A model generated the notes under the pieces. It made no database searches. It worked only from the letters and a program-made list of their open reading frames with translations, and was not told the DNA's origin. From Basidiobolus meristosporus CBS 931.73 (lineage: Eukaryota > Fungi > Basidiobolomycota), in contig MCFE01000252.1 in NCBI GenBank assembly GCA_002104905.1, positions 1 through 64,000 on the forward strand: DNA of 64,000 nt, given 5' to 3'. Position numbers and translations under genes: made by a program. Shown here piece by piece: positions 23,951-59,290 of this stretch. Each line of letters starts with the position of its first letter. The stretch's first letter is position 1.

Positions 23951-26194
23951 CCTTACTTACAGTTAGTGGATTCTTGGCTATTTGTGTATATAGTGAGTAT
24001 ATTTAAAGGTAAATATGTGGCAATCATCACAGCTTCCAAGGTTGACTTGGATAGTTCCTTCTCTAACTGCATCTGGTGAGCTATTATCACCCATGAAAAC
24101 CTTTTCAATTGTGATTTCTCAACACTATTGCTTTGTGAAACAATTTGGACCTGCAGGTGGATCAAATCCAGATCAGCCATCAGGATACTGCAACATGGCT
24201 GTCATAATGCCCAAAGCTTGGAATTATTGGCCCCTATGCAATTTTGTGACATTATTATGATGGTGCTTTGCGGAACTTACTGCTCAATATCACTAAAGCA
24301 TGAGGGTTGAAGCAGTTGTTTGACAAGAATTGCATAGCATTCTCATGGTCTAAACTCACTCTACATATATTAGAGCTGACCTAACCAGCCAATACATCCT
24401 ATTGCCTTAAATAGCACAACACTCAACTGTGCTCAAATGGCCTCATTGCAGATGGCTGCTGGCATCCTAATGGTAGTATTGTGGGTTACAGCTAGCTCTG
24501 TATAATGCAACCATTTCAGTTTACCATATGTCATCTCCTTTTTCTACCTCCCTTTGTGCCATTCACAAGTGGCACTGTAGAGTCACCAATCTTTATTTGC
24601 TTACCCACTGCTTCATTGGGTATTCCACATACAGGTCAAAACAAATAAAACTATGACCTCCTGAACATCTGCAATGAAATTTTTGGGTATTTTGCCAATG
24701 AATTCCTTCTCCTTGCTAGATTCTAGTCTCCCTTTGAGGTACACTCTGGCACTTAGTTGTGTGAGCTCTATACTGAATGATATAGAAGTTGGTTTGTGAC
24801 CAACACAAACATGGCATACTTTAGTAAAGTTATTATAACAAAAGTTTGCTGCTTGTTGTTTCCAGCCCAACCAAACATAACTTAACTGGTTACGCATATA
24901 TTGGGGCTGCTTAGCTTTGTATTGCCAAAGATATAGGTGTCTTCATATGCGCATCTGCCCTGAGTATTTTCCAACTCTTTGTGGCTGACCTCCTTGTGGC
25001 AACTCATCACATCCATTACAGACTTGAAGGTAATATTATTGATGAGATTGGGATATAGTAGAACCTACAACTTGACTTGTCTTCCTATCTCCCCATGCAT
25101 CTGCTCTATAGGAGACTCCAAATGGGAAGTCAGGCACAAATTCCCTACTCACCATGCTAGATCAAACAGTGAATGGATGCAGAGGCACAGAGATCTACAA
25201 ATTCAGCGTTATGCATGCAGAAATGGCTGCTAAAATCCTATTACAAGCTTCTTGCATAAAAGTAGTATATGCAATAAGTTATCATTGGTGATCTGCATCA
25301 GGATATTTATTTGTACAATGTCAACATATGACTTCTAATGCTTCCAGTGTACTCTTGGTAGAAATGGCCTCAGAAGGTCACTTGAGTCAACACATATTCA
25401 GTTCATCCAGTCCTTGCACTTGTAAAATTGCATGTGCAAATGAATATTAATTGGAGTCCATGATGGGTACTTGGGGTAAGATATACTTAGTAATATCCTG
25501 CCATTTTTTTTGAATTTCTCTGGTATCTTCAAGGGTACATTTAGCTTGAAATGCCCTTTATACAGCTTTGTCATTAGTATAGATATATTGCTTCAAAGTA
25601 AATGCACTGCTCCTAGCAGAGATCATTGGCTACTCAGATACCCTATAACTTAAGTATCTTTGGTTTCTAATTTATTCCATATTCTGTTCAATGGTTTATA
25701 GTTTGCCATCCTTGCTGCAATTGCCAGCCAACTTCTGTATGTTCTTACAGCAGGAAGGTGATGTGCTAATTCTGGTGTTTAGATATTACCAATAAGCATG
25801 AGCTATGGATAAAATCCCCTGGATTGTACACACATGTTCCAAGTTTTGATATAACAGTTGTGGAGGTATAGAGAGTTTTGCCAGTATTGTATTCACTAAA
25901 ACTTGAACTTATTTCTATTGAGGTTCAAGCAGCCCCTTTTATGCATTTTCCAGATCAATTGCTGGCTGAATGCATTTCCTAATGTAGGATGTAGCTGATG
26001 ACTCATTTGATTGCATCATCAACATCCAACAAGATCCTACTTAACATATGTATTTCTGTCAGATAAGGAATTGCTGATTCATTTGCATACTATTGATGCT
26101 GATATAATAGAAATACTGATACACTGATAGGCTGAGCATATAACTAACTGATTTGACTAAAAGCTGATCCAACTTGAACATTTAACAGTAGATC

Positions 26195-34542: not shown

Positions 34543-35614
34543 TGTAATGGGGTGACAGTGACACCCACTGACAGATGTGCTCATTCCCATAATTTCTACT
34601 TCCCTATATCTCTACTACACTTATTTTAGTTTTATCACATTTGTCTTACCTGATCAGTACTATCCCATAAGCCGGTTGACTATCACACCTGCTTACCTTA
34701 TAGCATAAGTTATCCCTCACTTTATGTAATATTACTAGATGTAAGTGCTTCTATATTAGGCAAGTACCCGTGCCAGTACCCAAGACACATGGTCAATCCA
34801 TGTCACCATCCCTGCCATTTTCATACCACATGTGGTATCCCTATGTTACACAGGTTTCAGAGTACTAATTCCTGATTGGTTGGATGTGCTGTACCTCTTA
34901 GAAACTTCCAGCACCTACTTAAAACATTCTTAGGTCATTCTAAAGTCATTAAGACTTCTATTGACATCTGGAACCTTCTGGAACACCCTGATTAGTAATC
35001 ACTGAGCCAGTAAGAAAAGTATATAAGTGAGGCTATCCCTCAACAATAAATCATCATCCCTTTTATCAATATACCACTTGTTGATTAGTGTGATCACTGC
35101 TGCCTGCTGCTACCTGAACTTCTAACCGCAGACCACAGGACATTCCCAGGAAACCATGCTGGCAGCCAGCTGACCTTGGAGGCACTACTTGTGTGGAATA
35201 CTCAGAGTAGGTATATTTTATTATATTTGATTGGTTTCCAAAGTTTGTTCTTGTACAGGCAAAGATACTTTTCTGTCTTAGTGACTATTGACCACAGCTG
35301 CATTCTTATCAAGTCCCTGCTGGTGGAGTTTACAGTTGTTTTGACTTTGGAAGCTTTTGTACACTCTGATCTCAAAGGACATTGAAGCCAGTAAAAGCTT
35401 TTGTTAAGATGCCAACTAAGTTGGAGATTGCAGCTCAATAGTTTTCCATTGACAAGCTTGAGGCTTTATCCCCCTTCACATTAGATTAGATAAAAGACCC
35501 AGTATTCCTAGCAAGCTTTTGCCAGAGGTTATTGCACCCAGTGAACTCCCCATACACATACACACTTCAGAAGTGTTGGCCGTATTTTGCCCTTGGCACT
35601 TATACACCACTACA
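34543..35614 (+). repeat. Gypsy-type LTR family C, long (~1.07 kb) decayed copy
   Basis: TGTAATGG...CCACTACA; shares 'ggcaagtacccg..cagtaccc', 'agaggttattgc.ccc' and 'tacacca' blocks with 48049-48852 and 39064-39785. Confidence 0.75.
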
Positions 35615-35799
35615 CTGTATGGCAGCCTACAGCTGATTCTGTATAATGCTACTGTACCTATTCACAAAATGGTATTTCCTTTTTCTACCTCCCCTTGTGC
35701 AATTCATATATTCCACTGTAGAGTCACCATTCAATACTTGGATTACTTGCACTCTCTTGTGCAGTTACAAGTAACTCTTCATCAGTATTTATATTATTT

Positions 35800-36947
35800 G
35801 CCTGCTCTAGTATCTGTTTTTTACCTGCTTGTTTCTCCATACATTCTCTTGCCCAGTGTCCTGATTCTGACAGTAGTTGTAGCAGCCAGGTTGTCCATGG
35901 TTTTGTTGCTTTCCTTTCTTTTCTGTGTGCCTTTCTGAGCCAAATAAAGCATTATCTTCAATTTTCTCTGCTTGCTGATTATATCTGAGATCTTCATGGA
36001 GAAGTCTTCTTTTGACATATTCTAAAGTCAGATTGTCTTCTAGGCTTTCAAATAATAGTATGAGTGGCTCAAAGCAGACAGATTATCTTTTTCTCATCAT
36101 ATACACCAGCATTAATAATGTTAGTTCTTCAGCAAGTGTCTCCATTCCAGCAATAAGTTGTAGCACGTCATCATCTGGCTTCTTTCACATGTTGAGGAAA
36201 TTTTGCTTAAGTAAAGCCTGCTTGATACTGCCTGTACTCTAAAGATCTTGTCTCAGGAATCCTGTGCTGCTTTGGCAGTATTAGAAGCATGAATTTGTTT
36301 GATGGAGGAATCTTGCACACTACCACTTATGGCATTAAAGGCTTTTCTCTCCATCTCTTGAGACTTTTCAACTTCTTCCGCTGCTCCTTTGTGCTCAACC
36401 TCCCTTCCTGTTCCTATATTCTAGAGCATTTTTTCCTCAAGGTGGATCTGCATCTGGATTCTCCAAAGTCTGTAGTTCTTTCAATCAGTCCTCTCCTTTA
36501 CAGGGAAGATGTTTGTATTGATTAGTTTGCTGTAAGATGCTATTCTTTGATTAGATTAAGGCAACTGGGGCTCATTACCTGTTGTAATTTAAGAATTGAT
36601 TTGGATATAAGAAACTTATAAGAAATAGTGATAATACTTGAGCTGTTGTTTATGCAGAAATAAGTACAGTATTAATACCATTGTAGAAGTAATATAACTG
36701 TAACACTAAGTATGGAGGGTTTTTCAACATTCAGGAGCATTCTGTGGCAGTTTCAGGGCCAGTACATAATGCCTGGTAAAAGTGCTATTATGATCTTGAC
36801 TATAAGGGAATAATCATAGGATCATAGATGAGAAGAGAGTGGCAAAGTTAGGGCTGTAATTTAGTCCTACAGTGACCAAGACTAGTCCGGACTTGTTAAG
36901 TAAGCTTTTAGCTGCTGAATGATACCAAATAGTCCAATATTTCAACA
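35800..36947 (-). mobile_element. 5' end of a copia family B element (LTR ~36581-36947, PBS, gag remnant)
   Basis: Minus strand LTR followed by GGTAATGAGCCCC (copia-type PBS) and a degenerate gag. Confidence 0.8.
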
Positions 36948-36949
36948 AG

Positions 36950-39785
36950 CTCTGGGACACTACTGAGGTTAGGCCAGGAGTAAGGAAGTTTGTCAATTAC
37001 TACATCTTGGACAAAGATTCAACACTTATGGTTGCTTGCCTGGAGACTCCAAGACACAAATGATATGCTACTGGCCCACTCCTACAAACCTAACACAATC
37101 CCAGAGCTTTGTAGTAGCTTGTATTATCTCTAGGATCTGGATACCCAAATTTTCCAAAATTGCAGAATCAATTTGCTGACTGCAAAGAAAGAACACCCCA
37201 TTTGACTGGGGAGAGTACAAGAAGATGCAATGCAACCACTAAAAGAGACCCTAGAGGCTGCAGCAGCTCTATGACCCTTTCACTAACAGAACACTGAATG
37301 CCCACCTATATTGATGGCTGATGGAAGCCCCATAAAAGCTGGGGCTCTACTGGGCCACGACAATCAAGATAGCATCTGCTATGCCTGCAGGTATGAGAGT
37401 TACCTATTCTCTCCCAGAGATCAAAGGTACTCTCAGATTTAGAGAGAACTGCTGGGAGTTGTGAAGATGCTGGGGAAACTCAAGTAACAGCTCTACAGGA
37501 AACATGTTATCCTGGAGACAGTAACCCAGTCACTTATATAAGTGATAAATATGCCTAACCTATCTGATGATGCTACTAAGCAATGGATGGCATGGTTGAA
37601 GATGTTTGACTTTGAGATCAGATGTATCCCTGGCAAGAAAAATGTTGTAGCTGATGCACTATACAAAAGTTTTCCACAATTACTTGAGGACTTGGACCCC
37701 CACTTTCACAAGGTGATTGATGCAGAGGTATGACATATTGTCATAAAAGAACAAGAGAGAGCTACCTGGAGGCTGATCATTGAGTATCTAAGGACACTCA
37801 AGAGATATCGATGGATGGAACCTCATGAGCTCAGAAAACTCAGAAAGAAGGCACACTCTACAATCTCAAGGGTGACCTCCTCTACAAGCAAGTGATGCTT
37901 GGACTTACATCAAGAAGAGTTGTCACTACTCCACAAGAGCAGCTGAGCATCATGACAAACATCCCCCAAGGAGAGCCAGGGGGACATAGTGGCTGAGAGG
38001 CTACCTACAATGCCACAGCTCAGAGGTACTAGTGGAATAACATGTACTATGATATTCAACACTTTGTTGAGTCATGTGTAGCCTGCCAGAAGAGATCCTC
38101 CAAGTGTTATGAAGAACCACTGCATCCTACTTACACAATCTGTCAATGGCAAAAGGTTGGCATTGGCCTTATTCACTAGCCAACAGCTGGGTCAAAGATG
38201 TACCTGATTGTTGCTAAGTGTTTAGGAGAGCCACTGCATCCTACTTACACAATCTGCCTATGGCAAAAGGTTGGCATTGGACTTATTCACTTGCCAACAG
38301 CTGGGTCAAAGATGTACCTGATTGTTGCTAGTGGTTACCTTATTGGGTGGGCAAAGGCTTGAGCCTTGCCCAACAGCAAGAGTTATATCATATGGAGATT
38401 TATAATTGAAGATGTTTTCTGTAGATTTGCCTGTATCCAGCATGATCCAAGAGTTGTGCTCAAAGTATAAGACACTCATTGCTGTTACTACAACTTTCCA
38501 CCCTCATGCCAATGGAGTGACAGATAGAGGACATAGGTCACTGGTGAATTTTCTAGCCCAGAGCTGTGAGAATGATACTTTACAATGGCCACAAAAGTTA
38601 CATCTTGCACTTTGCGCATATAGAGTTACTACCAAGAGAACAACTGGACAATGCCATTTACACTACTATAGACACTGTCATGTGGGACTCACTTGAATGG
38701 ACATTCAATATGCAAACTGAAGACCACTTTACAACATGCATAGAGCAACTTGATCACCATGATTTAATTATTAACTAATCTGCTGAACAATTTAAGGAGA
38801 TGTGACCAAGAACAAGGCACCCTTTGACAAGGGGCACTCAACAAGACCCATCCAACTTTCACTAGGAGACCCAATACTCTGCTATGATTCAACTATGAAC
38901 AAACAATGTGATTGGAAATGCAAGCTACTACACACCCAAGCTTAACAACACCCAACTAAGAGCTCAAGTTGCAGGTAACCAACTTATGTTATCAATGCAT
39001 AGGAATTATGAACATCTAGATTAGAGTACTTTGACCCAAGCTCAAAGCTGACAGGGGGGTGGATGAAGAGAGGTTACAATGACACCCACTGACAGATGTG
39101 CTCCTTCTCATATTTTCTACTTCCTTACTCCTCTACTACCCAAGTTTTGGATTTATCCCATTTGTCTTATTGAATCAATAATATCCCATAAGCTGGCTAA
39201 CTATAGTACCTGACTACTTATTGTACAGGCTGCACCTCACTATATGTAAGGTTTCTAGATGTAAATGCTTCTTTATCCAGCAAGAACCTGCACCAGTATG
39301 CATGACATATGATCAAGCCATGTAACCATCCCTACATATTCATTCCATTTAGGGTATCCCTATGTTATACTGGTCTCAAAATACTGATCCCTTATTGTTT
39401 AAATCTGCTGTGCCACTTAGAACCTCCCAGTGTCTACTTTGAACATTCTTTGCTCATTCTGATGTTGCTAAGATCTCCATTGATCTCCACAACCTTCTGG
39501 AGCACCATGATCAGTAATCACTTAGCCAGCTAGTACATTGTCATCTCAACAAATGCTGAGCTCAGCACATACTTTTGTTAAGATGCCAACTAAGTTGAGG
39601 ACTGTAGCTCAATAGTATTCACTTGAAAAGCTTGTGGCTATATTCCCTCTCACATCCAAGTAGATACAGGACCCAAGTATTCCCAGCAAGCTTTTGCCAG
39701 AGGTTATTGCCCCCAGTAAGCACCCTACAAACATAACACTCAAGAAGTGCTGGACATATCTCCCTTGAACCTATACACCATCACA
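36950..39785 (+). mobile_element. Decayed gypsy pol (RT C-terminus, RNase H, integrase) + PPT + LTR-C; likely relative of the autonomous partner of the Gag-PR element
   Basis: 'WMAWLKMFDFEIRCIPGKKNVVADAL', 'TTFHPHANGVTDRGH'; PPT GGGGGGTGGA at ~39054-39063; LTR-C 39064-39785. Confidence 0.8.
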
Positions 39786-39849
39786 GCAATGGCACACATC
39801 AATCTAATCAACACCAACATACTTCACAGGAGTGCCATGTGTCAAGTCA

Positions 39850-42800
39850 ACATGCATTGGGGCAATGCCTGTGGTTGAGAGCAAAATACAAAAACCTGAC
39901 AGCCTGTGCAATTGGACCTCTATGAAAAATAATTTGATCCTGCAGGTGGATCAGATCTGGATAAGCCATCAGGATCCCATTTAGAGACCATCATAACACC
40001 AGCAGCTTGGAATCAGTGATCCTCTTAACAATCTTATGACAGGATTACAATGGTGTTTTGCTAATTTTACTTCCAAATGAAGTTATAAAACTTGACAAGA
40101 CTTGATTGGAGATGTGGCAATAATTGCATGGTATTGTTGTGGTTTTGTTGTGCTCTACAACTATTTTAAATGGATGCAACTAGCCAGGACATCAAGTGGC
40201 CTTATAAGGCAAAATATTTGACAGTATTTCTACAGCCTCACAGCAAGATTCTGATGGCATTATAATGCCAGTATGGTAGCCAACAGCTAGTTCTGTATAA
40301 TGCTACAATACCAATTTACCAAGTAGTATTTCCTTTTTCTACCTACCCTGGAGCAATTCATATAGTGCTCTGTAGAATCACCCCTCTTTATTTGCTTATC
40401 CACTACTACCTGAGGTAATTCTTGTTTGTGTGAATTCTTTATTGAATAGTGTAGAAATTGGCTTGTGACCAAGAGAAGTCAGGCATAACTTGGTAAAGCT
40501 CTCCTAATAAATATTTGTTGCTTGTTGCACTCAACCCAACTTTGCATTACTGGACTGAATATCTATGCATTGGGGCTGCTTAGCTTCCTAATGCCATAGG
40601 CATAGGTGTCTCCATGTGCACATTTGTCCTCAGTATTTTCCAACTCTTCCAGGCTGTCCTCCATATGCCAACTCATCACATCCATGATGGACTTTAGGGA
40701 AAAATTCTTGAAGAGATTGGGATATGGTAGTACCTGCAACTTGACTGATCTTCCTATCTCCCCACACTTCCAATCCATAGGAAACTCCTAGAAGGTGAAG
40801 TAAGGCCCAATATTCTCCACACACTGTACAAGATAGAATAGTGAATAGATACAGTAGTGGCAGAGATTTACATGCTCAGCTTTATGTTTGTAGTATAGCC
40901 ACTCAAATCCCAACACAAACTCCTTGCACAACAGCTGAAGATGTGTTAAGTTGGCATTGGAGATCCACCTCTGGACAAATACTCCTATAATGTCCACATA
41001 TAGCTCCCAATACTTCCAGTGTACTCTTGGTAGGAATGGCTTCAGAAAGCCACTTGAATAAACACACATCCTGCTGATCCAGTCTTTGCAGTTGCATTGC
41101 CACATATGCATATGAATATTGATTGGAGCCCATGAGAAGTACTTAGCAAAGTGGATACTCTACAATATCTTGCCAATTATTTCAAATTTCTCTGGTATCT
41201 CAAAGGGCTCATTTTGCTTCAGATGCTCCATGTACAACTTGGTGATCACTAGAGGGATATTGTTGAAAAGCAAACACATCACTCCCAGTGCAAAGCTCTT
41301 GCTCCAACAGATACCCTCCATCTTAAGTATCTCTGATTTCCAATTTCCTCTATATTCTGGCCAATGGCTTATAGCTTGCCAGCTTTGCTGCAACTGCATG
41401 CTGACTTCTGTACATTCTCTCTGTGTGAAGATGATGTTCTTAGTGTATTGGTGATCCACTTCTGGAAAGTATTCCTTCAATGTCCACATATGACACAAGT
41501 TCTTCCTATGTACTCTTGGTAGAAATGGCTTCAGAAAGCCTCTTGAATAGACACATATCTAGCTAATCCAGTTCTTGTGCTTGTATTGTTAGATATGCAT
41601 ATGAATGTTGATTGGAGCCTATGAGAAATACTTAGGGTAGCAGATACTTTGTATTACCTTGCCAATTCATTCAAATATCTCCAGTATCTCTAAGGGTGCA
41701 TTCAGCTTGGAATGCATGATGTACAACTTGGTCATCAGCATAGGGAAATTGTTGAAGTGGAGATGCATTGTTCCAGTGGAAAGCTTTTGCTCTTACAGAT
41801 ACCCTATTTCTTAAGTATCTCTGGTTTCTGATTCACTCCATAGTCCAGCTAATAGCTTATAGCTTGCCAACTTTTTTGCAATTGCATGCTGACTTTTATG
41901 GTCACTTTGCAGGAAGATGATGCTCTGAGTGTTAGTGTTAGGGTATTGATAATGTGTGTGAGTTATGGAGTAAATCCCCTGGATCTCACACATTCAACAG
42001 CAATACTGTTGATTGTGCCCCAAAAAACCTGCTATCTTGCTGATGGCTGTGATATCTCCAATGTAGATAGTAATATGAGCTTTTACATGTTAGCCATTTA
42101 CTGTAATCCTGCTCAAAAGCATACAAAATTCATCCAGAAATGGATACAGGTGGCTATCCAGGTTAGATGGTGATTTAGGCCCAGAAACCAGTGAGATTAC
42201 TGTCAGATTATTGCTCTGATTCTGTAAGATGGGTGGCACATTCCAATTGATGAGAATCAGTGGCTAGCAGGATTTGCTGGTAGAGTACTTCTTTGATGAG
42301 AATCCATCAAGTGCTAAGGCAAAGGCATGGTCATGCATACCTTCAAAGTTGCCCTTGCTGCTTAGCTGCTTGTACTGTTTGCCATCAAATATATTGAATA
42401 TGTATGTGCTTGATTGATACTGAGTGTGGTACCATATAGCTTTGCAATATTTGTTGGACTGCATTAGCTTCCTCAGACAGGGTATGCTTGGGAATATATC
42501 TGGAGTGTGAATGATGTTTTCCCTCAATGGTGGTGGATTCCTACAATTTAGACATGTTGCAATGGTAGCATTTTTGGATGTGAATGCCATGCGGTTGTTG
42601 ACACATGCTGGAATCAGGACAGTCTCTGAATCTTATGTTGCCTGCTGCATGATAGTCGTTTGCTTGTACCATATACATGGTAAGTTACATCCTGGAATGA
42701 TCTTGGCAAGAAGTAGTAAAAGTCCTTAAAGCCCCCATTACTGATATCAGTGGAAATGCACCACTTCTCTAGCCACATCATTACATCATTCACCAGCAGA

Positions 42801-44740
42801 TAGGTTACTGGGCTCACTTGGCTCCACAAAGTATCCTTGGGATTTGTTTCAACAGGTGCTGTCTCATTGCATATTGGGATTTGACTGGGCTTATACATGG
42901 TACTGCTGATAGGAGAGATAAGCTCACAATCCATTATTAAACCTTCTTTGTTTGTGCTATCACTCTGCATGCCATATTCAGAAGTCTGAGGTGAGCCTAA
43001 AGGTGTCACAAACTTACCTGACTCAGTTTGCATATAGTGGCAAAGATGGCCAGGTGCTGATATAGAAGTATCAACTGGCTTGCAAGATAATATTGGAACA
43101 GTAGTGACTGATATATGGTGAACTATGACTTGTGTGGCAAAACACTGGCCATGATCCTTGTAATACTTCCTATGCTGTCTGCATGCTTCACAACTGAGAG
43201 GCTTGCTACAATAGCCACATGATCTTTTTTCTCTTCTCTTATGGTGTTGAACCAAAGTAGACTTGTTGATGGGGCAAACAGATTGACATTCAACAGTGCA
43301 ATGCTATCATATCACTTTTTAGTCAATACTCATGTGAATTCATGACAGTCTTGTACTTATGATGTTGCACCTACATGAATATACAATTCAATGATGACCT
43401 GCCATAGTAAGCAATAACACAGTTGTGGCACCACATACACACATATGTGTAAACTATTTCCCCTTTGGTTTGACTCACTCCAGTATATATGCCACCAAAA
43501 AATAAAGTAAAGTCTTCTGGTTCCCAACTAAACCCTACTGCTGATGGCAGCAGAAGTATGGTTGGACAACAGCTTGCTTTGACATTCAGTGCAACCAGCA
43601 GGGCTACATCCAAAAAGGCCATGTTAACTGTGTGCTCACTGAAGGTAATAATGTGGACTCCTCAGGCTCTCAGTCAAGTAGGCAATTGATAACATCAGCT
43701 GAGCCCCTAGCTGACCATTATGCTCATGTAGATGAGAATGTAGCAAAGGCAGTACCCACAGTTGAAGACCAGCCAGTAGCCATAATAGCATCAGCACAGC
43801 CCATATTTGCAAGTATGCTGTCAGCTCACACCAAAGCATTAATGAAGCAATTAGGTGCAGTGGCTTTTAGGATAGATGCAATGGTCCAGAAAAATTAGGA
43901 AATAGTCCAGAAACAGGTTGAACAAATAATATGTGTAGAGCAATCAATATCCCAGGTAGAGAAAGCAGTATCTTTGCTGCAAAGAAAGGACTTAAGTAGC
44001 TCAATGTCACAGCCAAGAACTGCAACATTTCCCAATGTAACAGCAGAAGAACACTGTACAGTCTCTGAAGCACAACAATGGTGCCTAAAGATAAAGCCCA
44101 CAGAAATATCTATCACAGTATGGGAGGGAGACAATGTGGTGCTTATACCGAAGCCTAATAATCAAAAGACATTGAAGATCTGTGAAGCCATTGAGTGCAA
44201 TAGTGATTAGTGGACTATTATTCAAGAGGCTGTCAGAAGTCTGGCACACCATCACCTTAAGGCCAGCATACCATTGCACCATCAGGAACTCAAGGCCAAG
44301 CAGAATGCACTTGACGTGTTCCATGAGCATTATCCTGAACTCAGATGGGCAAATAGATTTTGGGCTAGCATTGGAATGCTAAGAAAGTATTTTAAGAACA
44401 GCAGAAACTATCAAAGGCAGAAGAACAAGGATGCCATGGCTGAAAAACAGTGGCTTCCTCAAGAGCCCATTGCAACTACAGTTGAGGGCTCAAAATACAT
44501 AGAAAAGCAATGTCAGGTTGCCAGGAGAGTGCCAGCAAGTGACATGCAGGCCAAAACAGATGTGTCAGTGCTGAATGTAGCAAGGAGAAAGTGCAGTTCA
44601 TCACAAGAAGCACTCAGACAAGGTAGCAGTGAAAGACCTGGCAGTGATAAAGGAAAAGAAAAGGGAAAAATGTCTACCCAAGCCAGAGACAGGGAGGCAT
44701 GCAATAAAACTGCAGTTCTTGCCAATTAACACTGCAAGCA
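39850..44740. mobile_element. CACTA copy E, the most complete: transposase on minus (~40400-43400) and divergent accessory ORF on plus (~43490-44740)
   Basis: 'FNIFDGKQYKQL...LALDGF', 'HWKYWELYVDIIGVFVQRWIS', 'LVQCVENIGPYFTF', 'MDWKCGEIGRSVK'. Confidence 0.82.
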
Positions 44741-46250: not shown

Positions 46251-48856
46251 AGACTGCTAGCAACTGCATCTAGATTGTGCCAGCCTGCCTTGCTAAATTC
46301 CCTACAGTCACTTGCAATGCCAGTGCACCAGCGCATGTCAGTTTGACTTACATAAACACCTTTCACAAGAGCACCCTGCATTGAGTCAACAACTGTGCTT
46401 CAAAGCAAGACTACCATAACTTGTCATACTGCTCATTAGACATGAGTCCATTGGAGCAGGCCAAGTTGCGTCAACATGTAGCATTCCATTAAGCTCAGCC
46501 AAGGGCCTTACCAACACATCAAGTTGCACCTGCACCTGGCATTACACCTGATCATCAGCAAGAGACTTCTGTTAACTGACTGGCAATGTCCTACTTGAAG
46601 TGACTCCACCACTAGGACCTTTGGCAAGTGGAAGAACAAATCAGGATGTGGCATTTTAGGCTGGTTCTGTAACATCATCTTGAACAATTCAGCATTGCCA
46701 AGCTCCAGCACTGCACTCATCAACTAGGAGGCAAAATACTGACTACAAGTACACAAGTGGCCAAGATGATAGTCAATCAGGAATTAGTTCAGGTGTGCAA
46801 AGTGATTCATTACCAAATGCTTCAGTATTAATCCCTGTGAGAAAAAAACATAGGAGAAAACAATTTCATTGAATTGCTATCATTTGTTGTGATCTGAACA
46901 ACTCATTTGTTTTTGCAATCCAAATCAAGCCATCCTAAATCAGTTATCATTTAGTTTTTGATATGAGTAATATCAAGATTGTCTCCCACTTGGACTAAAC
47001 CCCTATAAATAAACACCCTGCATAAATATACACTATCTGTAGCACCAGTGCAGCTATTTCATCTGTCTTGCACTTACTCAATTGGTTGTGTGCTGGCTAT
47101 GATACCTAGGCAATCACTAAATTCAGGCATTTACTTGCATAATGGGTAAAGTGGGATATCTGATAATAAATCAGGTAGCTTGTGTATTAGTCAATGAGTC
47201 AATTGGGGTCTTGTAGCTTCAGGATACTTTAGGACCAACTAATCACTGACATACTGTCTAATTAGAGTGATGGTAGCCAAAATGGTAAGTATCAGTGTAG
47301 TTTACAGTGTGGTACACATTTATTTCCATTTACATTAAAGAAACATATCCAAATACCAGATTTTACTTACCATAGTAGTGGCATCCAATTACACATGTGA
47401 GGCAAACATTACATGTTGGTGCAATCATTGGTGCCAAACATTTGTATCAGATTCTGCCATAGTATGCAGAACTGCCCCACATGCAATGTGTTGTGGTAGT
47501 GCAGAGTCAATGTGTCACGTCTGTTCATCCTTGCTTGTAGTCATATTTAGTCAAGATATAAATAGTATGTTTTTGGTGGTTGCTGCATTTCTGCTGATTT
47601 TCTCTCTTTTTGAAGCACTGGCTAGATGTGTCCTCACCATTAGCAGTATTGGCAAGAAAGGTTGTTATTACACTTAACAGGTTGTGAGTATCCTTTTGGT
47701 GGTGATCAATGCTTATTAAAGAATTTTTTTCCCTCTCATTGGTGCTTGATTTTCTCATTACAAATCCAGGGGCCTTCCATATGTGTATTATAGTGTTGAA
47801 TCTTCAGCTCTGGACACTATGACTTATAAAAGACAATGAGACCTGTCTATTAAGCTATTCAGGAGGACAACTAATGTGTATTCAGCACTATTTTGTATGC
47901 CCATAATCAACAAAGTATTTCAGTTGATTAGATCTTATATGTTCTCATGTGAGCAACTTTACTAGTAGAGAAGCTTTGTCTAAGGTACATATTCCTAGCT
48001 GCTGAGCCCAATTGGTAGGTGTCCTCTAGTACCTGTCAGGCATTGCGTTGTGGTAGGGTAAACATACCTCCCACAGACAAGTTTATTCATATAGTCATTA
48101 TGATATACTTATCCATATTTTATCTTATCAGTATTATCCCATTCTTCTTCTGCCCATATTATCAGTATTATCCCCATATGATGTTTACCCTGATTAGTTA
48201 TTAGCATTAGTTATCCCAGATGTTATTCAGCTTTGTGATCAGTAGATGTATCTATATAAGGCAAGTACCCGCGTCAGTACCCGTGACACATGACCTAGGT
48301 CTGTGTTACCATCCCTACCATTTCAATACCATATATGGTATTTCTATGTTGCACAGGTTTCAGATTACTGATTCCTGATTGGTTGAGAGTGCTGTGCCTT
48401 TTAGAACCTTCCAGGACATTCTTGGCATATTTTTAGCTCATAGTGATGTCATCAAGAATTCCACTGATACCTAGAATCTTCTAGAACCTTGTCATTAGTA
48501 ATCACTTGGCAATCAGGAAAAGTATTTAAGGGAAAGCAATCCCTCATCAATAAATCATCCCTTCTATCAGTAACACTTCTACCTTATTGATTAGCAGCTG
48601 ATCACTGCACCTGCCTTCAACAGTACATCTCAGACCTGCCATCAAGGAGCTTTTCAGGGTAGTGCACAAGACACACAGAGGCCTTTGGAGACACTTGGAG
48701 CACCTAGGAAGCTAGAGAAGCAGGAGCTTTTACCATAGTGACATATTGACAAAGACACCAGCAGTTTAGACACAGAGGTTATTGCACCCATCAGACACCT
48801 CACACACCTTGAGTTGTGTAGCTTCTCCCTGGAGTACCTCTACACCACCACATATT

Positions 48857-48873
48857 TGGCACCCAACGTGGGG
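48857..48873 (+). promoter_or_regulatory. Primer-binding site, tRNA-Lys(CUU)-type
   Basis: TGGCACCCAACGTGGGG differs by one CpG transition from the retroviral tRNA-Lys1,2 PBS TGGCGCCCAACGTGGGG. Confidence 0.8.
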
Positions 48874-48926
48874 GGTTTGACTGAACTGCCCCTAGAAGAC
48901 TTAAGAAAGAACAAATTATCAAGACC

Positions 48927-50783
48927 ATGGATCTACCTTTACCAGGAATGCAAGGAACCCCTTTCTTTGATGGAACTAAAGTTAAAGCTTTCATCAAGAG
49001 GTGGGAGCTTTTCTGCAGAGCCCACAAAATACCTGAGGCCATTATGGCTGAAGAGATGCCCCCCTACAGCACTGATGAGATCATGCTCTCATTATATGAA
49101 AGAAATGATCTGCTGACAAATTGGACCCTCTTGAAGAGCTACTTGATTGATGAATATGGAGAGAGACAAGTTGACTACACACTTCAAGACTTGGAGAACT
49201 TTGCTTATAGCAAGTTTAAGCTGCTACCATTGAAAGAATACTTGAGTGGCCTTGAGCAAATTGGAGAGTCACTGAAAGCCCAAGGAGTTATAACTGATCT
49301 CACTTTATCTGCCTATCTTCTCAGAGCACTACCAGAAGACCTGGTGAGAAGGATTGAAAACAATCCTACTGTGAAAGCTATGAGTTCACTGCCTGCATTT
49401 CAGTTAGCTAAGCAGATTCTACTTGCCCCTGAAGAAACCTCACCAATCAGAAAGCTTCTTTCAAGCTCAGCACAAAACCAAGATAGCCAAGACTTACTTC
49501 ATCCCAGTAATCAAAGCACTCAAATTCAGGAGCTGACACAGCAAATAGAGAAACTCTCTTTGCTACTCACCAGCAAAGCATATGGGCAGAAGCCAGTAGA
49601 GAAAGAAGTCAAATATACATGCATGTGGTGTGACTCTGCCAACCATTCCAAGAGAAATTGCCAAGAGCTTCAGTCATTACTATCCACAGGTGATGTCCTA
49701 TATAGTCCTCAGGGATACATAGTCAGTAAGCATGGTGACAAATTATCCACAGCATTTGGACAAGGAGGAATGAGAGTTCACTACAAGCAAGTCACCTCTC
49801 ATACAAGAAAGGTTCAACTCCATGAAGAAGAAGATCCTGACTACTTTGATCCAGCTGAAGTTCTGAACTTTGACTATGAGGACCCCAGAGAGGCCCAAGA
49901 TCATATAGCTTCAATTTATGCTTCAAAGAGACACCATCCTGAAAAAATGGCTAATCCAGGCCCAGCAACAAAAGTACCAAGATGTGAGCCAGAAGTTGTG
50001 ATTGAGAAGAAAGCATCACCCCCATTAATTTTACAAGAGTCTGCCAAGGCCAACAACTACCACATGCAGCCTAGAGTCAAGCAAAATGGTACCCCAGAGG
50101 CTCTGACAAGTCATATACTAGGAAGCAACATATCAATCAAGGTTGGAGAGCTACTCAGTGTATCACCATCTGTAAGAAAGACTCTGGATGAGCATATCAG
50201 AATAAGAAAGCATCCAATTGAATCAACTCAAGGCAACCAGGTCAGGACAGTTCAAGGAAGCCAAAATATCAGTAAGCTGCATCAAAGCCAGAAACACTAC
50301 TACTCAGTGGCAACTGCAACAACTACAGGAACTGTGCATAATCAAGAAATCCTATGTCATATAGACAGTGGATCTGAGATATGTGTGATGCCTTTGGAGG
50401 CTTGGAAACAACTACCATGCAAAGACTTATTGCCCATAGACACCAATATCAATTGGAGCATGAAGGATGCCAACTCAGGGCAATCAAAGCTTTTAGGAAT
50501 TATTCACAGCTTCCCTTTCATCATTGAAGGAATACCCCATGAGATCCCAGTATTCATATGTGCAAAGGCTAACTTTGAATTACTTCTTGGAAGACCATGG
50601 GAGGTAAAAGCAAGAGCAACTGCAGTGAACTACCCTGATAGTTCAGCATGGTATACTATATACTCAGAGAGCCCAGGACTAACAGCAACCTTCTGTGGTG
50701 TGGACTCAAACAATATCCGATCAATGACATCATGTAGATTTCTATCTCAAGAAAGGACAGGTGGCTTCATTGAGGAAGACTGA
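48927..50783 (+). CDS. Intact 618-aa retrotransposon Gag-aspartic protease polyprotein
   Basis: N-terminal 'PFFDGTKVKAFIKRWELFC', CCHC knuckle 'CMWCDSANHSKRNC', protease 'ILCHIDSGSEICVM' with 'LLLGRPW'. Confidence 0.93.
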   Translation: MDLPLPGMQGTPFFDGTKVKAFIKRWELFCRAHKIPEAIMAEEMPPYSTDEIMLSLYERNDLLTNWTLLKSYLIDEYGERQVDYTLQDLENFAYSKFKLLPLKEYLSGLEQIGESLKAQGVITDLTLSAYLLRALPEDLVRRIENNPTVKAMSSLPAFQLAKQILLAPEETSPIRKLLSSSAQNQDSQDLLHPSNQSTQIQELTQQIEKLSLLLTSKAYGQKPVEKEVKYTCMWCDSANHSKRNCQELQSLLSTGDVLYSPQGYIVSKHGDKLSTAFGQGGMRVHYKQVTSHTRKVQLHEEEDPDYFDPAEVLNFDYEDPREAQDHIASIYASKRHHPEKMANPGPATKVPRCEPEVVIEKKASPPLILQESAKANNYHMQPRVKQNGTPEALTSHILGSNISIKVGELLSVSPSVRKTLDEHIRIRKHPIESTQGNQVRTVQGSQNISKLHQSQKHYYSVATATTTGTVHNQEILCHIDSGSEICVMPLEAWKQLPCKDLLPIDTNINWSMKDANSGQSKLLGIIHSFPFIIEGIPHEIPVFICAKANFELLLGRPWEVKARATAVNYPDSSAWYTIYSESPGLTATFCGVDSNNIRSMTSCRFLSQERTGGFIEED

Positions 50784-52020
50784 GAGAGCACTTTGTTCTC
50801 CAAACTTACAGTGGTTAGCTAAAAAGTTTCAGGGAACTTTTTAGCTCAAGTGGGGGGTGGATGTGGTAGGGTAAACATACCTCCCACAGACAAGTTTATT
50901 CATATAGTCATTATGATATACTTATCCATATTTTATCTTATCAGTATTATCCCATTCTTCTTCTGCCCATATTATCAGTATTATCCCCATATGATGTTTA
51001 CCCTGATTAGTTATTAGCATTAGTTATCCCAGATGTTATTCAGCTTTGTGATCAGTAGATGTATCTATATAAGGCAAGTACCCGCGTCAGTACCCGTGAC
51101 ACATGACCTAGGTCTGTGTTACCATCCCTACCATTTCAATACCATATATGGTATTTCTATGTTGCACAGGTTTCAGATTACTGATTCCTGATTGGTTGAG
51201 AGTGCTGTGCCTTTTAGAACCTTCCAGGACATTCTTGGCATATTTTTAGCTCATAGTGATGTCATCAAGAATTCCACTGATACCTAGAATCTTCTAGAAC
51301 CTTGTCATTAGTAATCACTTGGCAATCAGGAAAAGTATTTAAGGGAAAGCAATCCCTCATCAATAAATCATCCCTTCTATCAGTAACACTTCTACCTTAT
51401 TGATTAGCAGCTGATCACTGCACCTGCCTTCAACAGTACATCTCAGACCTGCCATCAAGGAGCTTTTCAGGGTAGTGCACAAGACACACAGAGGCCTTTG
51501 GAGACACTTGGAGCACCTAGGAAGCTAGAGAAGCAGGAGCTTTTACCATAGTGACATATTGACAAAGACACCAGCAGTTTAGACACAGAGGTTATTGCAC
51601 CCATCAGACACCTCACACACCTTGAGTTGTGTAGCTTCTCCCTGGAGTACCTCTACACCACCACAGCGTTCCAATTTTTTTCTTGAGCAATGCATTGGCA
51701 ACTTGTCTTTTGCTTTAAGGTAAATGTAGCTGAACTCTCTGTGTTCTTTCTTCTGATACTTTGAGGCTTCTTCTCCTACACCTTTAGGATTGCATTCATT
51801 TCCCATAATAATATGCCAAAGGCCACTTTCCTGTAATATCATCTCAGCTTCATTTTCCAGCCTTGGTAGTTAGATTCATCCAACTACTCAGCAGAGGTAA
51901 AAATTCCAACTATAACAGTAGCAGACATTCCAGAGAGTGGCAGATTGGGGCTCATTACTGGCTTTAGGAGCTTTGGAGAAATTGAATGTGATTGGGAGAG
52001 CAAATAGATTATGTGGTCTT

Positions 52021-55000
52021 TGTTGTAAAAATTTGTAATTTCACCTAAATACTCACCTAACTTAGTTACTTGGATCATTACTGTCAAATCCTAGAGAATA
52101 CTGACCAAATGCCTTGTTGGAATCTACTTAGAATATTTTCACCAAAACATCTGGTGCCAAGAACATGAAATTTCCCTAAGTTGTCCAAACAGCCCCAAAC
52201 TTTGCACAAATGCTCTTGGGATCTTCCTACACCTGTTCTGTGTGCTTTTTATGGCAATATCATGTAAAAGTATAGATACTACTTATACATTCAATAGATT
52301 ACTAAGTGAAACCCCCATAATATACTTGTTCCCCTAATCACTTCCAATATCTCCAAGACTCTTACAACAGGTTATGAGCCCCAAGCTATCACTCTCTGCA
52401 ATGTCTACTGCAGCAATGACTGAAACTTTACCTCTGCAGAAAAGTTGGATGGATACAGCTACAATGTGTGGAAGTTGCAGATGATGATGCTGCTATAAGA
52501 AAGAGGTCTTTGTATATTGTCATGGGAGAACATTAGCCTCCTAAAAATGTGGGAGAGGGATTTTTAAAGTACCAGAAGAATGAACAAAGTGCCTTTAACT
52601 TTGTTTGCCTTGATATCAAGGACAATTTGCTAATTCATTGCTTAAGGGCAAAAACAGCAAAGAATGCCTGGAGGGCATTAGTTGACACCTACCAGTCATG
52701 TTCTGCTGCCAAGAAAATGTGTCTTAAATAAGAGTTCTATACAACAAAAATGCTGCCAGGAGAAGTCATGAATAATCTAATGAACAAAATTACCCTGCAG
52801 GTGGATGAGATGGAGTCTGTGGGTGAACCAGCTACTGATGAGGATGTAATAGTCAGCATCCTGAATAGCCTGACAGACAAGCTTCAGGGCTTTTTAGCTG
52901 CCCAAGAGTCCAAAACTGAAGATTTGACTTTAAATTATGTATATGGAAGGCTCCTGGATAAAGAATTAAGAAAATCAGGTGCCAAGAAGAAGGAAGAATA
53001 AAATGCTTAAATAGCCAGTAATAACCAACAAAGGAGATACCCAAGACCTTTTCAAGGAAATAGCAATTGTTTTGCAACTACTGCAAAAGGAAAGGGCACA
53101 CATCAGACCAGTGCTGGAAAAAGAGAGATAGTTAGCAGAAAAAGCCTGTATATGGAGATGTGGCAACAACTGAAGATAGAATACTCACATTTGCACTCAA
53201 TATGACCCTAAACAAGAATTCTCAGATGTGTCTAATTGACTCTGGCACATCTTAAAACTTTACCCACCAAGAAGAACTTTGTACCCAATATCAAGCAATC
53301 CCAATCAAGAAGGTTTTCATGGGTGACAATACCCTATGAAAAATAATTTGGTCCAGCAGGTGGATCCAATCCAGATCAGCTGTCAAGATCCCATCAGGAG
53401 ACTGCTATAATGCCAGTAGCTTGATATTAATGATCATCTACGCAATCTTATGATGGGATCATGACAGAGTTTTGCTAATTTTACAGCCAAGTAATGTTGA
53501 TAAAGTATAACAGTGTTTTTACAGTGTTTTGCCAAGAGTGGCATGACATTATTGCGGTCTTAGTGCACTTCTTGACTATTTAATTGGATCTAACTAGCCA
53601 GCACATCCAATTGCCTTCTATGGCAAATAACCTGACAGCATTTTGATGGCCTCTTTGCCAGCCTCTAATGGTATTTTCACAGCAGTATGGCAGCCTACTA
53701 CTAGCTCTGTATAATGCTATCATGCCAATTTACCAAATGTATGTTCTTTTTCAAGCCCCCCTTGCCAAATTCATATATTTCACTGTAGAATCACCCCTCT
53801 GTATTTGCTTTCCCACTACTACCTTGGGTATTCCACATATAGCTTGAATCAAAAGATACTTTGGCCTCCTGTTTACTAACCTCTACACACAGGCACATCT
53901 GCCGTAAATGACATAGTTCTATCACCTTAACTTTACAGCTCTTAAGTGTGAAGCATGCAAAGTTGCCATCTACCTTCTATTGCTGGTAACATATACATCT
54001 TGCAAAAATATGCTTGGTTGTTGCCACTTCTGCCACATATACCTCCTCAATATCTGCATAGAGCTTTTTGGTGTTTAGCCAATATATTCCTTCTCCCTCT
54101 TGGATTCTAGTCCCCCTTATAGGTGTGCTCTGGCACACATTTGTGTGAATTTGTGTTAAATGGTGTAGAAGTTGGCTTGTGACCAAGAGAAATCCAGCAT
54201 ACCTTGGTAGAGTTTTCTAATAAAAATTAGTTACTTGTTGTACCCAACCCAACTTTGCATTACTTAACAGATTACCCATGCAATGGGGCTCCTTAGCTAC
54301 TTAATGCCATAGGCATAGGTGTCTCCATGGGCACATCTGTCCTTGGTATTTTCCAACTCTTCCTGGCTGTCCTCCATGCACCACCTCATCACATCCATGA
54401 CAGACTTGAAGATGATATTCTAAGAAATAGCCCAAATTACTATATTAGTAAGGGTACAAATCTAGCCTATGCCTATTCAGTCCATATTGATGGGTCCCAG
54501 ATTGTAAAGAGGCCCTAAATAGCCCTCTGACAAAGTTTGAGATCTGCAATGACTGAGCAATATCAGGGCCTAATGGAAAATCAAACTTAGAACTTGGTCA
54601 AATTACCAACCAACCAAAAATCAATTGGATGCAGATAGGTCTTTAAGACAGAGTACAAGGCCAATGGTACAACTGAAAGATACAAACCAAAACTTGTGGC
54701 CAAAGGATACTCTCAAACAAAAGGACTTGACTATACTGAGACCTTTACACCAGTAGCCAAGTTTAATTCCATCAGATTAATATTGGCTATTGCAACCAAA
54801 TGTAAGTTTTCTATATATATCAAATGGATATCAGAAATGCATTTTTAAATGCCAAACTTGATGAGGATGTGTATATGCACCAGCCTGATGGGTTTGTTGA
54901 CCAAGATAACCTCCATTTGGTCTGCAAGCTTAAAAATTCTCTATATGAACTCAATCAATGACCAAGTGCCTGGAATTGCAAAATAGATTCCTATATGGAA

Positions 55001-57562: not shown

Positions 57563-59290
57563 CTACGAGCTGAAACCGCAGTATATAGCCCCAGCACCTG
57601 ACTCTCTGCAAACTGTTCCTGTTCCGCACTGACGGGGAACCCATGCTCCGTAAACACATTCTAAGTACTCGGCGTTAGCACCCTCGACAACACATTTACT
57701 GGTATTCTCCGTACATTCAGATCCGTTGGAGCTGGTTGAGTGGGCAGGCTCGTCAACTACTGAGGATTCCGGTGTATATTGAGCAGTCTCAGTAGAACTG
57801 GAGCTTGCAACGGAATCACTCGTCTCGGACACAGTGAGTGCACTTGATGACCCCGCCTCCACAGACTGGGATATATCCGATGTAGCGCTGGAGCTTTCTG
57901 GGCTTGGTACGCTAGAGGGCAGCCCGGCAGAGGTGGTTGGGACTTGAGGCTTGGGGATGGAGTTCCCGTGAATAAGCTGCAGCACATCCAATAGTTCGTC
58001 ATTGTTATCCTGGGTAACATCCCAATACATGACTCCCTTCAATCCTTTCTCTCTTGAGAAATCCACCTTCACTTGCAGAGAGGTAGGATCATCATAAGAA
58101 ATAAAGCGTTGATCCGAGGCACGAAACAGCCAAGGGGTTTGAGTAACATTGTCGTAATACCTTGACCAGCCCTCCACCGGCGTATATGGATCTTGCTTCA
58201 GAATCTCCTCTCTTATAAACTTCCACTTCCATACCCCGGAGTAGACGCTACCCTCGTTACAGAATAGATTTGGCTCATTGGAATCCGAATTATCTCCCTT
58301 GGGTGTGACAGCGTTTTTGGCGGCATACATGCTTATCGGCTTATTGTTCATATCGGTGTCGGCAGTAAGCGAGCGTCCATAGAAAGGTAGCCCCATAACC
58401 AGCTTCTCAGCAGGGAACTTGGCTGCTGTCCAATCATTGAATGCTTGCGTGACTGAGAATGGATCGCCGTTACCGGGGGAATAGTTGAAGGGTGCGTTGG
58501 GTCCAGTGGTGCTGGACCAAGCACCGTTGATATCATAGGCCATGATATTCACATAATCCAGGTATTGTGCGAATTCGGAAACATCAGTCAGAGGGATCCC
58601 ATCAGGCCCGTCAAAGGGCTTGACTCGAACAGCAGCAGACATTAATTTACGATCATTAGGGAACTCCTTGTCCATGGCTTCCCTCAACTCCTGGAGCAAC
58701 ACCAGGTAGTTGGCTGTATCGTTTTTGTCAACAACGTTGCATTTTCCGGCCTCGCGAGCAGGATACTCCCAGTCAATGTCGATCCCGTCCAGGTCCCACC
58801 CATCTGGGTTTTCATCGTATTCTGGCTTGGTGTTCTTACGAACAAACACAAGAGCATTCTCGATGAATTTCTGGCGCAGCTGAGGGTCTTTGGCTACCGA
58901 TGAGAATGTCTGGCCTCCCGTCCACCCGCCAAGGGAAATCAGGACCTTGACTCCTTTGGGCTTTGCAAGCGACACGATCTGGCGGATCTTGTTACCATCG
59001 TAGTAGCGGTCTATAGAAATGTTGGCGGGGTCGTCTTTCTTGGTCAATATTCCGAAGCCTGGGGTACTGCAATTAGTGAGGTAGAAACGGCCAATACTAT
59101 GCAGGAATCACTTACCGTAGTTGATATGCGTCAGCTTATCGTAATTTATCGCGCTTGGATCTAATTTCCCCCACGGAACATAATAGCCAACTACGATTTT
59201 GTCAGACGCTTCACCCGATTGTGCATATGCTAACGAGCTAAGCACGGCGACAGCAGAGAGTGCGGAAATTAAATACTGGCTTAGCTTCAT
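57563..59290 (-). CDS. Secreted GH18 chitinase (556 aa, 2 exons): signal peptide, catalytic domain, Ser/Thr linker, C-terminal Cys-rich (CBM19-like) module
   Basis: Exon 1 59290-59116, 57-bp GTAAGT...CAG intron (59115-59059), exon 2 59058-57563. Motifs 'KVLISLGGW', intact catalytic 'DGIDIDWEYP', 'IMAYD', 'KLVMGLPFYG', 'GVMYWD'. Confidence 0.95.

Follow-up and report, generated by a model that had tools for sequence, protein, structure and literature searches.

The first 64,000 nucleotides of contig MCFE01000252.1 of the fungus Basidiobolus meristosporus CBS 931.73 (assembly GCA_002104905.1, forward strand; hereafter the window) contain a structurally complete long terminal repeat (LTR) retrotransposon of 3,617 bp, at positions 48049-51665, whose single open reading frame (ORF) of 618 amino acids is predicted to encode a Gag protein, a zinc knuckle and a protease, and which carries no pol. 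The element is best explained as a non-autonomous, pol-less derivative of a Basidiobolus lineage of Ty3/gypsy type that integrated in its short form, with reverse transcriptase (RT) and integrase supplied in trans, and we put the probability of this explanation at about 65%. Pol-deleted elements are an already known kind. The present copy is a very young insertion of an old lineage, and it shows very recent activity of one or more LTR retrotransposon lineages in B. meristosporus amid ancient, CpG-poor transposons. Given the recent insertion, a working source of RT and integrase should persist in the B. meristosporus genome.

All features of the element lie on the + strand. Its two 804-bp LTRs (48049-48852 and 50862-51665) are identical at 804 of 804 positions when compared base by base, the identity breaks off precisely at both outer edges, and the termini TGTGGT...ACCACA form a 6-bp terminal inverted repeat of the TG..CA type. 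The tetranucleotide GCGT lies flush against the element on both sides as a target-site duplication (TSD; 48045-48048 on the left and 51666-51669 on the right). Reading of the 5′ LTR identifies a TATA box, TATATAAGG, at 48253-48261 and an AATAAA polyadenylation signal at 48549-48554; a scan of the LTR with bacterial promoter and terminator models was uninformative, the LTR being eukaryotic. A spacer of 4 nt (TATT) separates the 5′ LTR from the primer-binding site (PBS), TGGCACCCAACGTGGGGGG, at 48857-48875, and a G-rich polypurine tract (PPT) of 14 bases, AAGTGGGGGGTGGA, at 50848-50861, abuts the 3′ LTR. All of the cis signals for retrotransposition are thus retained, namely an LTR with TATA box and poly(A) signal, a PBS, a PPT and TG..CA ends. 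The PBS is a TGG-initiated 19-mer that resembles the complement of a tRNA-Lys(CUU), and 16 of 17 bases agree with the PBS for tRNA-Lys1,2 as quoted in PMC4261875, the reference being mammalian and not from the host. ARAGORN, run on the window and on the Basidiobolus loci examined, found no host tRNA gene for checking the PBS.

A preliminary description of this DNA, made by eye, had proposed a very recent insertion with identical 804-bp LTRs, a perfect 4-bp GCGT TSD and an uninterrupted ORF for Gag, zinc knuckle and protease whose stop lies 78 bp short of the 3′ LTR, had seen no RT, RNase H or integrase, and had regarded the element as the only undamaged one among decayed transposable elements. 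Each of these points is borne out by the comparisons reported here. It had also named a tRNA-Lys PBS and a PPT; both sites are present, and the tRNA-Lys identity of the former stands on the indirect mammalian comparison.

The flanking DNA provides an internal control for the insertion. An inverted paralogue of the flanks, at 52450-52950 (reverse complement), aligns without a break when the two flanks are joined and has the target site only once, and therefore represents the empty site of a clean insertion. The young element sits in one arm of an old inverted duplication (47588-48048 plus 51670-52017 against 52313-53141), the arms of which are about 68% identical, so that the flanks are themselves old repeat DNA. 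The identity of the LTRs over all 804 positions makes the insertion recent, and since the remaining LTR pairs checked in the window are only 77-85% identical, it is the sole young element there.

The 618-amino-acid ORF (48927-50783) is uninterrupted and, from its motifs, profile matches and modelled fold, is predicted to specify a Gag-zinc knuckle-protease protein of Ty3/gypsy type. Searched against Pfam, the ORF gave nothing more than a sub-threshold match to DUF4100 (E 7e-5, below the Pfam cut-off; residues 371-428, 50037-50210) and a weak match to Asp_protease; among 50 aligned relatives DUF4100 was found in 31 and Retrotrans_gag in 4. The zinc knuckle is clearer, with the pattern C232-x2-C235-x4-H240-x4-C245 (49620-49661) occupying alignment columns that are invariant or nearly so in the same 50 relatives. 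A first AlphaFold model, from the single sequence, was unusable (predicted local distance difference test score, pLDDT, 34) and was replaced by a model based on the alignment, with a mean pLDDT of 77, in which the helical N-terminus (residues 1-170), the knuckle region and the beta-rich C-terminus (residues 460-600) are the confident parts. When the model was compared with viral models by Foldseek, the entire chain was collinear with retroviral Gag, Gag-Pro and badnavirus polyproteins.

The C-terminal domain (residues ~460-600, 50304-50726) is the best-defined part of the protein. Both protease motifs, D480-S-G482 and L554-G555-R-P557-W (LLGRPW), are intact in the ORF and conserved in the alignment. 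The best match of the family profile in the PDB was the Ty3 protease (7q5b, E 7.8e-11), with DDI1 retropepsin domains also matched, and Foldseek aligned the modelled domain with the DDI1 RVP domain and with HIV-1 protease at template modelling (TM) scores of 0.73-0.79. The active-site motif, the C-terminal motif and the predicted fold of a retropepsin (peptidase family A2) are thus all present, and the domain is accordingly predicted to belong to that family. The all-helical N-terminal domain (residues 1 to ~170-180, 48927-49466; model pLDDT 85-97) is capsid-like in appearance, and the family profile matched the Copia virus-like particle capsid 8vvw (E 1.2e-3); the match is weak, and a capsid identity for this domain is the least firm part of the Gag reading. 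No gene model is annotated on the ORF, nor in the part of the surrounding transposon field covered by the record excerpt.

An exhaustive HMMER search of protein collections returned 618 relatives of the ORF, the best of which are only 24-28% identical. The top matches come from Smittium, a genus of Harpellales gut fungi, and one of the top-matching Harpellales contigs we take to be from Furculomyces; other relatives are elements from soil metagenomes. Several of these relatives are polyproteins with Gag, protease (PR), RT, RNase H (RH) and, in some, integrase (INT), and residues 5-599 of the query align with their N-terminal 600-650 residues, upstream of the RVT_1 domain. Gag-pol queries align with the element solely over their own Gag-PR part, leaving no RT, RNase H or integrase, and the same queries do detect pol remnants elsewhere in the window. 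Since RT itself is absent, the Ty3/gypsy assignment is based on the homology of the Gag-PR part to polyproteins with the order PR-RT-RH-INT and on the match of the profile to the Ty3 protease. On sequence similarity, the lineage would belong to a clade of "DUF4100-type" Gag-PR proteins known from Zoopagomycota fungi and soil metagenomes. Two protease fragments, P0117 and P0283, were considered as Basidiobolus siblings and rejected, being GC-rich metagenome elements. A further protein of 203 amino acids, P0110 from read set SRR5579859, matches the N-terminus of the query's Gag plus the C-terminus of its protease and may be another internally deleted derivative elsewhere.

Comparison with these relatives shows what has been lost. 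The missing stretch runs from just past the protease to just before the PPT, the ORF terminating 6-20 residues past the final conserved protease block, and the absent block corresponds to the complete RT-RH-INT unit, some 3.5 kb if the soil metagenome element L006 is taken as a guide. The relatives handle the PR/RT boundary in different ways. In the Smittium elements L001 and L005, PR runs into RT uninterrupted in one frame, and in the soil metagenome elements L006, L007 and L008 a first ORF encoding Gag-PR stops at the PR/RT boundary and RT-RH-INT follows in an overlapping -1 ORF2. In L011 an in-frame stop codon lies between PR and RT (L011:18-1448, JGI contig Ga0494388_0219973; PR and RT in the same frame, with ORFs at 18-593 and 606-1448), a split that suggests either stop-codon readthrough or a decayed copy and that would be a third mode of handling the boundary in the clade. 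The L008 sequence (L008:1-6407, JGI contig Ga0596944_0015476) has the order pol end, ~660 bp, gag-PR, pol start, and represents a two-ORF relative assembled in tandem or in circularly permuted form.

The position of the stop codon at this boundary raised the idea that it is necessarily the natural stop of an ORF1, and 79 of 134 relatives do end within 40 residues of the protease. That idea was downgraded by a tree of the DUF4100-PR region, in which the relatives that end after PR are scattered and unclustered and the query falls beside the single-ORF Harpellales elements, with weak support (Shimodaira-Hasegawa-like approximate likelihood ratio test, SH-aLRT, 84). A natural ORF1 stop is possible on these alignments. 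Beyond the stop codon, neither of the other two frames holds a coding continuation into pol, and the +1 frame is open for about 40 codons and closes before the PPT.

Two alternative origins of the short form turn on this junction. In the first, a full-length element inserted recently and then lost pol in place by illegitimate recombination or replication slippage, so that the short form never moved. An internal loss would leave the identity of the LTRs and the TSD untouched, and 0 differences in 804 bp would allow up to ~10^5-10^6 years for it to happen, as estimated from generic fungal substitution rates. A perfect 13-bp stem-loop found by folding directly 5′ of the PPT (50815-50846; z-score only -1.9) could be the scar of such a rearrangement. 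It may equally be read as a cis element, and its 3′ arm is homologous to the block preceding the PPT in an old relative of the element that is described below. Set against an in-place deletion is the requirement that both breakpoints fall within the 78 bp between ORF and 3′ LTR, or a few codons upstream of the stop, and spare both the ORF and the PPT, which is improbable for a random deletion. No fragment of pol was left behind either, and we regard this origin as unlikely.

In the second, a spliced or subgenomic Gag-PR messenger was retrotransposed, which is feasible for an RNA that retains the PBS and the PPT, and the deletion junction is an exon-exon junction. The lost segment is the entire RT-RH-INT unit and its boundary coincides with the PR/RT point at which relatives switch ORFs, and there is a precedent in Drosophila copia, which according to the summary in PMC5580714 (citing Yoshioka 1990) splices out an intron covering pol. 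The likeness is that the pol region is removed as one block; the difference is that the copia case is an RNA product of a full-length Ty1/copia element and not a genomic copy. The idea is purely inferential, and no conserved splicing features were found in Arabidopsis Ty3/Gypsy elements (PMC5580714). A founding splice event for this copy is accordingly a distinctly improbable explanation.

The junction could also be an artefact, with an assembly collapse having deleted pol from a full-length element. Repeat-rich contig ends are prone to error, and the transposon field opens contig MCFE01000252.1. The strain was, however, sequenced with PacBio technology (PMC7466969), with reads that exceed the length of the element, the junction has no collapse-prone repeat apart from the short hairpin, and the structure is internally coherent, so that we give an artefact hardly any credence.

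A decayed relative in the same window lies about 9 kb upstream of the young element, at 34543-39785 (+), and was recognised from LTR similarity, pol remnants and a PPT junction. It consists of LTR A (34543-35614, which contains an inserted stretch), a PBS-like sequence, TGGCAGCC, directly after LTR A, remnants of RT, RNase H and integrase (36932-38985), a PPT, GGGGGGTGGA (39054-39063), and LTR B (39064-39785), all on the + strand. LTRs A and B match the young LTR at 71-75% identity and one another at 77-81%. Directly in front of LTR B, AGCTCAAAG is followed by GGGGGGTGGA and the TG of the LTR, and this PPT-LTR junction recurs in the young element. The A-B element is an ancient representative of a related lineage and at one time carried pol. 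Neither blastn nor tblastx found any significant gag-PR similarity in it, and because it is too decayed in this respect it cannot locate the breakpoints of the deletion. LTR B is preceded by a PPT, as a 3′ LTR would be, yet is followed by GCAA and a PBS-like motif, TGGCACACATC (39786-39800), as a 5′ LTR would be, and the 4-bp flanks of the A-B pair differ (CCAT versus GCAA); these surroundings may be the remnant of a tandem LTR-internal-LTR-internal array, or may be due to chance.

A second relative is found in Basidiobolus ranarum. On a 2-kb contig (JASJQH010010687.1; L009:1461-2052) the sequence reads ...ACA, TT and TGGCACCCAACATGGGGG, and then enters a gag whose product shares 38% identity with residues 3-180 of the ORF. 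Its PBS is the same as that of the young element except for a CpG to CpA change, and the observed/expected CpG ratio of the contig is 0.07. The contig ends too soon to show what follows gag. The shared PBS and the related gag in B. ranarum indicate that the LTR-PBS-gag layout is conserved across the genus.

The dinucleotide composition of the element bears on the age of its lineage. The young element contains 8 CpGs against an expectation of 156 (observed/expected 0.05), and those that survive are placed at three per LTR, 9-30 bp past the TATA box (48270-48283 in the 5′ LTR), one in the PBS, where the PBS must pair with the tRNA, and one in the ORF. The same depletion extends over the transposon field at 1-56 kb, with a CpG observed/expected ratio of about 0.05 and a TpG/CpA excess of 1.3-1.4, and switches sharply at about 56-57 kb, the genes from 58 kb on having ratios of 0.8-0.96. 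The field-wide pattern looks like deamination of 5-methylcytosine (5mC), or a CpG-directed repeat mutation, that is confined to transposons in B. meristosporus. Because the LTRs are still identical, the loss of CpGs from the young element must have occurred in its ancestors, before insertion at this locus, and the insertion is therefore young and the lineage old. The composition suggests that, over a long history of replication, the lineage was exposed to CpG-to-TpG pressure (probably from 5mC deamination) and that its ORF and cis sites were maintained by selection. This selection may have acted on a full-length ancestor and is thus no proof of selection on the short form.

If the element did integrate in its present form, the absence of RT and integrase from it requires that it moved in trans. 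The steps would be transcription from the LTR, by means of the TATA box and the poly(A) signal, translation into Gag-nucleocapsid-protease, packaging of the element RNA, reverse transcription primed by tRNA-Lys, and integration with a 4-bp duplication, the last two steps being carried out by enzymes of an autonomous relative, its RT and integrase. Pol would have been deleted either in an earlier cycle, which would imply a propagating ORF1-only family, or during reverse transcription of this very copy. The preliminary description had already proposed that RT and integrase are borrowed in trans; that part follows from the lack of pol for any copy integrated in short form, and we infer that the deletion came before integration.

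Several observations weigh against integration in short form with help in trans. The anatomy alone is as compatible with a deletion in place after integration as with one before it. The nearest relatives, those of the Harpellales, have a single gag-pol ORF, so that the stop codon may owe its presence to the deletion and not mark a natural end of ORF1, and the -1 frame, into which the two-ORF relatives shift, has stop codons that close it where the ORF ends. The window holds no sibling copy and no solo LTR of the young type. Among ~15 billion predicted proteins there was no relative with more than about 50% identity; an exact-sequence look-up of the ORF gave no record, a word-index protein search gave no match for the full ORF and only two metagenome fragments for residues 370-618, and protein cluster look-ups yielded neither a sibling copy nor an intact partner. 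No relative emerged when JGI metagenomes and IMG/VR were scanned with back-translated patterns, and the exact pattern of LTR end plus PBS had 0 matches in metagenome contigs. No intact autonomous partner has been seen in these searches either, the lone pol-bearing relative in the window being long dead and its gag-PR unrecognisable.

The same searches bear on whether the copy belongs to a replicating Gag-PR-only family, the members of which would share the PR-to-PPT junction, have different TSDs, make their own capsid and protease and parasitise an autonomous partner for RT and integrase, as is presumed for the TR-GAG elements of plants. The clean excision of pol with retention of a complete Gag-PR ORF and every cis signal is what such a family would show, as are a fresh insertion amid elements diverged by 15-23% and a lineage that was evidently functional throughout a long CpG erosion; the lack of gene models on the ORF and in the transposon field fits repeat masking and is a weak hint in the same direction. 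A second copy is, however, absent from the window, no sibling was met in the protein or DNA collections searched, and an intact ORF, which every very young copy should have, is no sign that the short form is under selection. We hold a replicating family as a tentative possibility. That the family would in addition be actively propagating in Basidiobolus today, as an ORF1-only (Gag-nucleocapsid-protease) parasite and the first family of TR-GAG type to be described from fungi, with a protease of its own, is a doubtful extension. Its founder may have been a subgenomic or spliced RNA without pol that was retrotransposed. Such a family would compete with, or live off, an autonomous element that is itself still active, in a genome where transposons are otherwise erased by CpG mutation. 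Should further copies turn out to have the identical junction, the concept of a capsid-carrying parasite of a parasite would extend from plants to early-diverging fungi, with the addition of a protease; as a single copy, the element is an ordinary deletion derivative, mainly of interest for annotation.

The integrated pol-less element favoured here has its nearest counterpart in the TR-GAG elements of plants, which are defined as being less than 4 kb long, with LTRs, PBS, PPT, TSD and a single ORF that is GAG-only (Chaparro et al. 2015, PMC4350172). Both kinds are smaller than 4 kb (3,617 bp here) and have the LTRs, PBS, PPT and TSD; both have one ORF, which stems from the 5′ portion of the parent, and lack RT and integrase, and both are presumed to be mobilised in trans. 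They differ in coding content, the plant ORFs encoding Gag only and the Basidiobolus ORF adding a protease that from its motifs and modelled fold is apparently functional, in the length of the TSD (5 bp in TR-GAG, 4 bp in the Basidiobolus element), and in their status, the plant elements forming multi-copy transcribed families as against one known copy in an early-diverging (zoopagomycete) fungus. The preliminary label "TR-GAG-like" therefore holds for the size, the cis features and the lack of pol and does not extend to the coding region, which carries a complete retropepsin in addition to Gag, and the element is for this reason not filed as a TR-GAG under the strict definition, although it probably works like one.

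Other non-autonomous elements share less with it. BARE-2, which depends on BARE-1, and the LARD and TRIM elements likewise rely on an autonomous partner with shared cis signals. BARE-2, however, keeps pol and is without a working gag, and so is the mirror image of the Basidiobolus element, and LARD and TRIM elements have zero coding capacity, from which the intact 618-amino-acid ORF sets the present element apart. The closest homologues are the Ty3/gypsy elements of Harpellales (Smittium, Furculomyces) and the soil two-ORF elements (together L001 and L004-L008), which are collinear over Gag, CCHC knuckle, DUF4100-like segment and PR; they differ in being only 24-28% identical and in having RT-RH-INT, which continues the same ORF in L001 and L005 and occupies a -1 ORF2 in L006-L008.

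Gag-derived proteins that are made without pol also include Ty1 p22 and Fv1, both of which interfere with particle assembly. By analogy, the Basidiobolus ORF might have been kept because its Gag-PR product poisons the assembly of particles by the autonomous family; the Gag-nucleocapsid-PR ORF is intact and the concept is known for Ty1 (PMC4551931). Ty1 p22 and Fv1 are truncated or domesticated proteins with no mobility signals of their own, whereas the Basidiobolus Gag-PR is full and lies between identical LTRs; such an anatomy, with the full set of mobility signals, belongs to a mobile copy and not to a domesticated gene. The ORF moreover sits in a CpG-erased and presumably silenced transposon field, away from genes, and has no orthologue retained at a fixed position. 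A role in restriction is therefore very improbable.

Two further features of the window lie outside the element. An unclassified repeat family has at least four copies on the + strand (4398-7281, 24126-25595, 39915-44225 and 53329-54433) with 62-85% mutual identity; two ORFs tested from it (42614-43255 and 44274-44729) had no Pfam match, and the family showed no similarity to gypsy pol. At the edge of the transposon field lies a GH18 chitinase gene (57563-59047, - strand), whose product has a Ser-rich linker and, at its C-terminus, a Cys-rich tail. The ORF is 100% identical to the public protein model of B. meristosporus CBS 931.73, which is partial (331 amino acids) and spans just 54% of the open frame of 494 amino acids.

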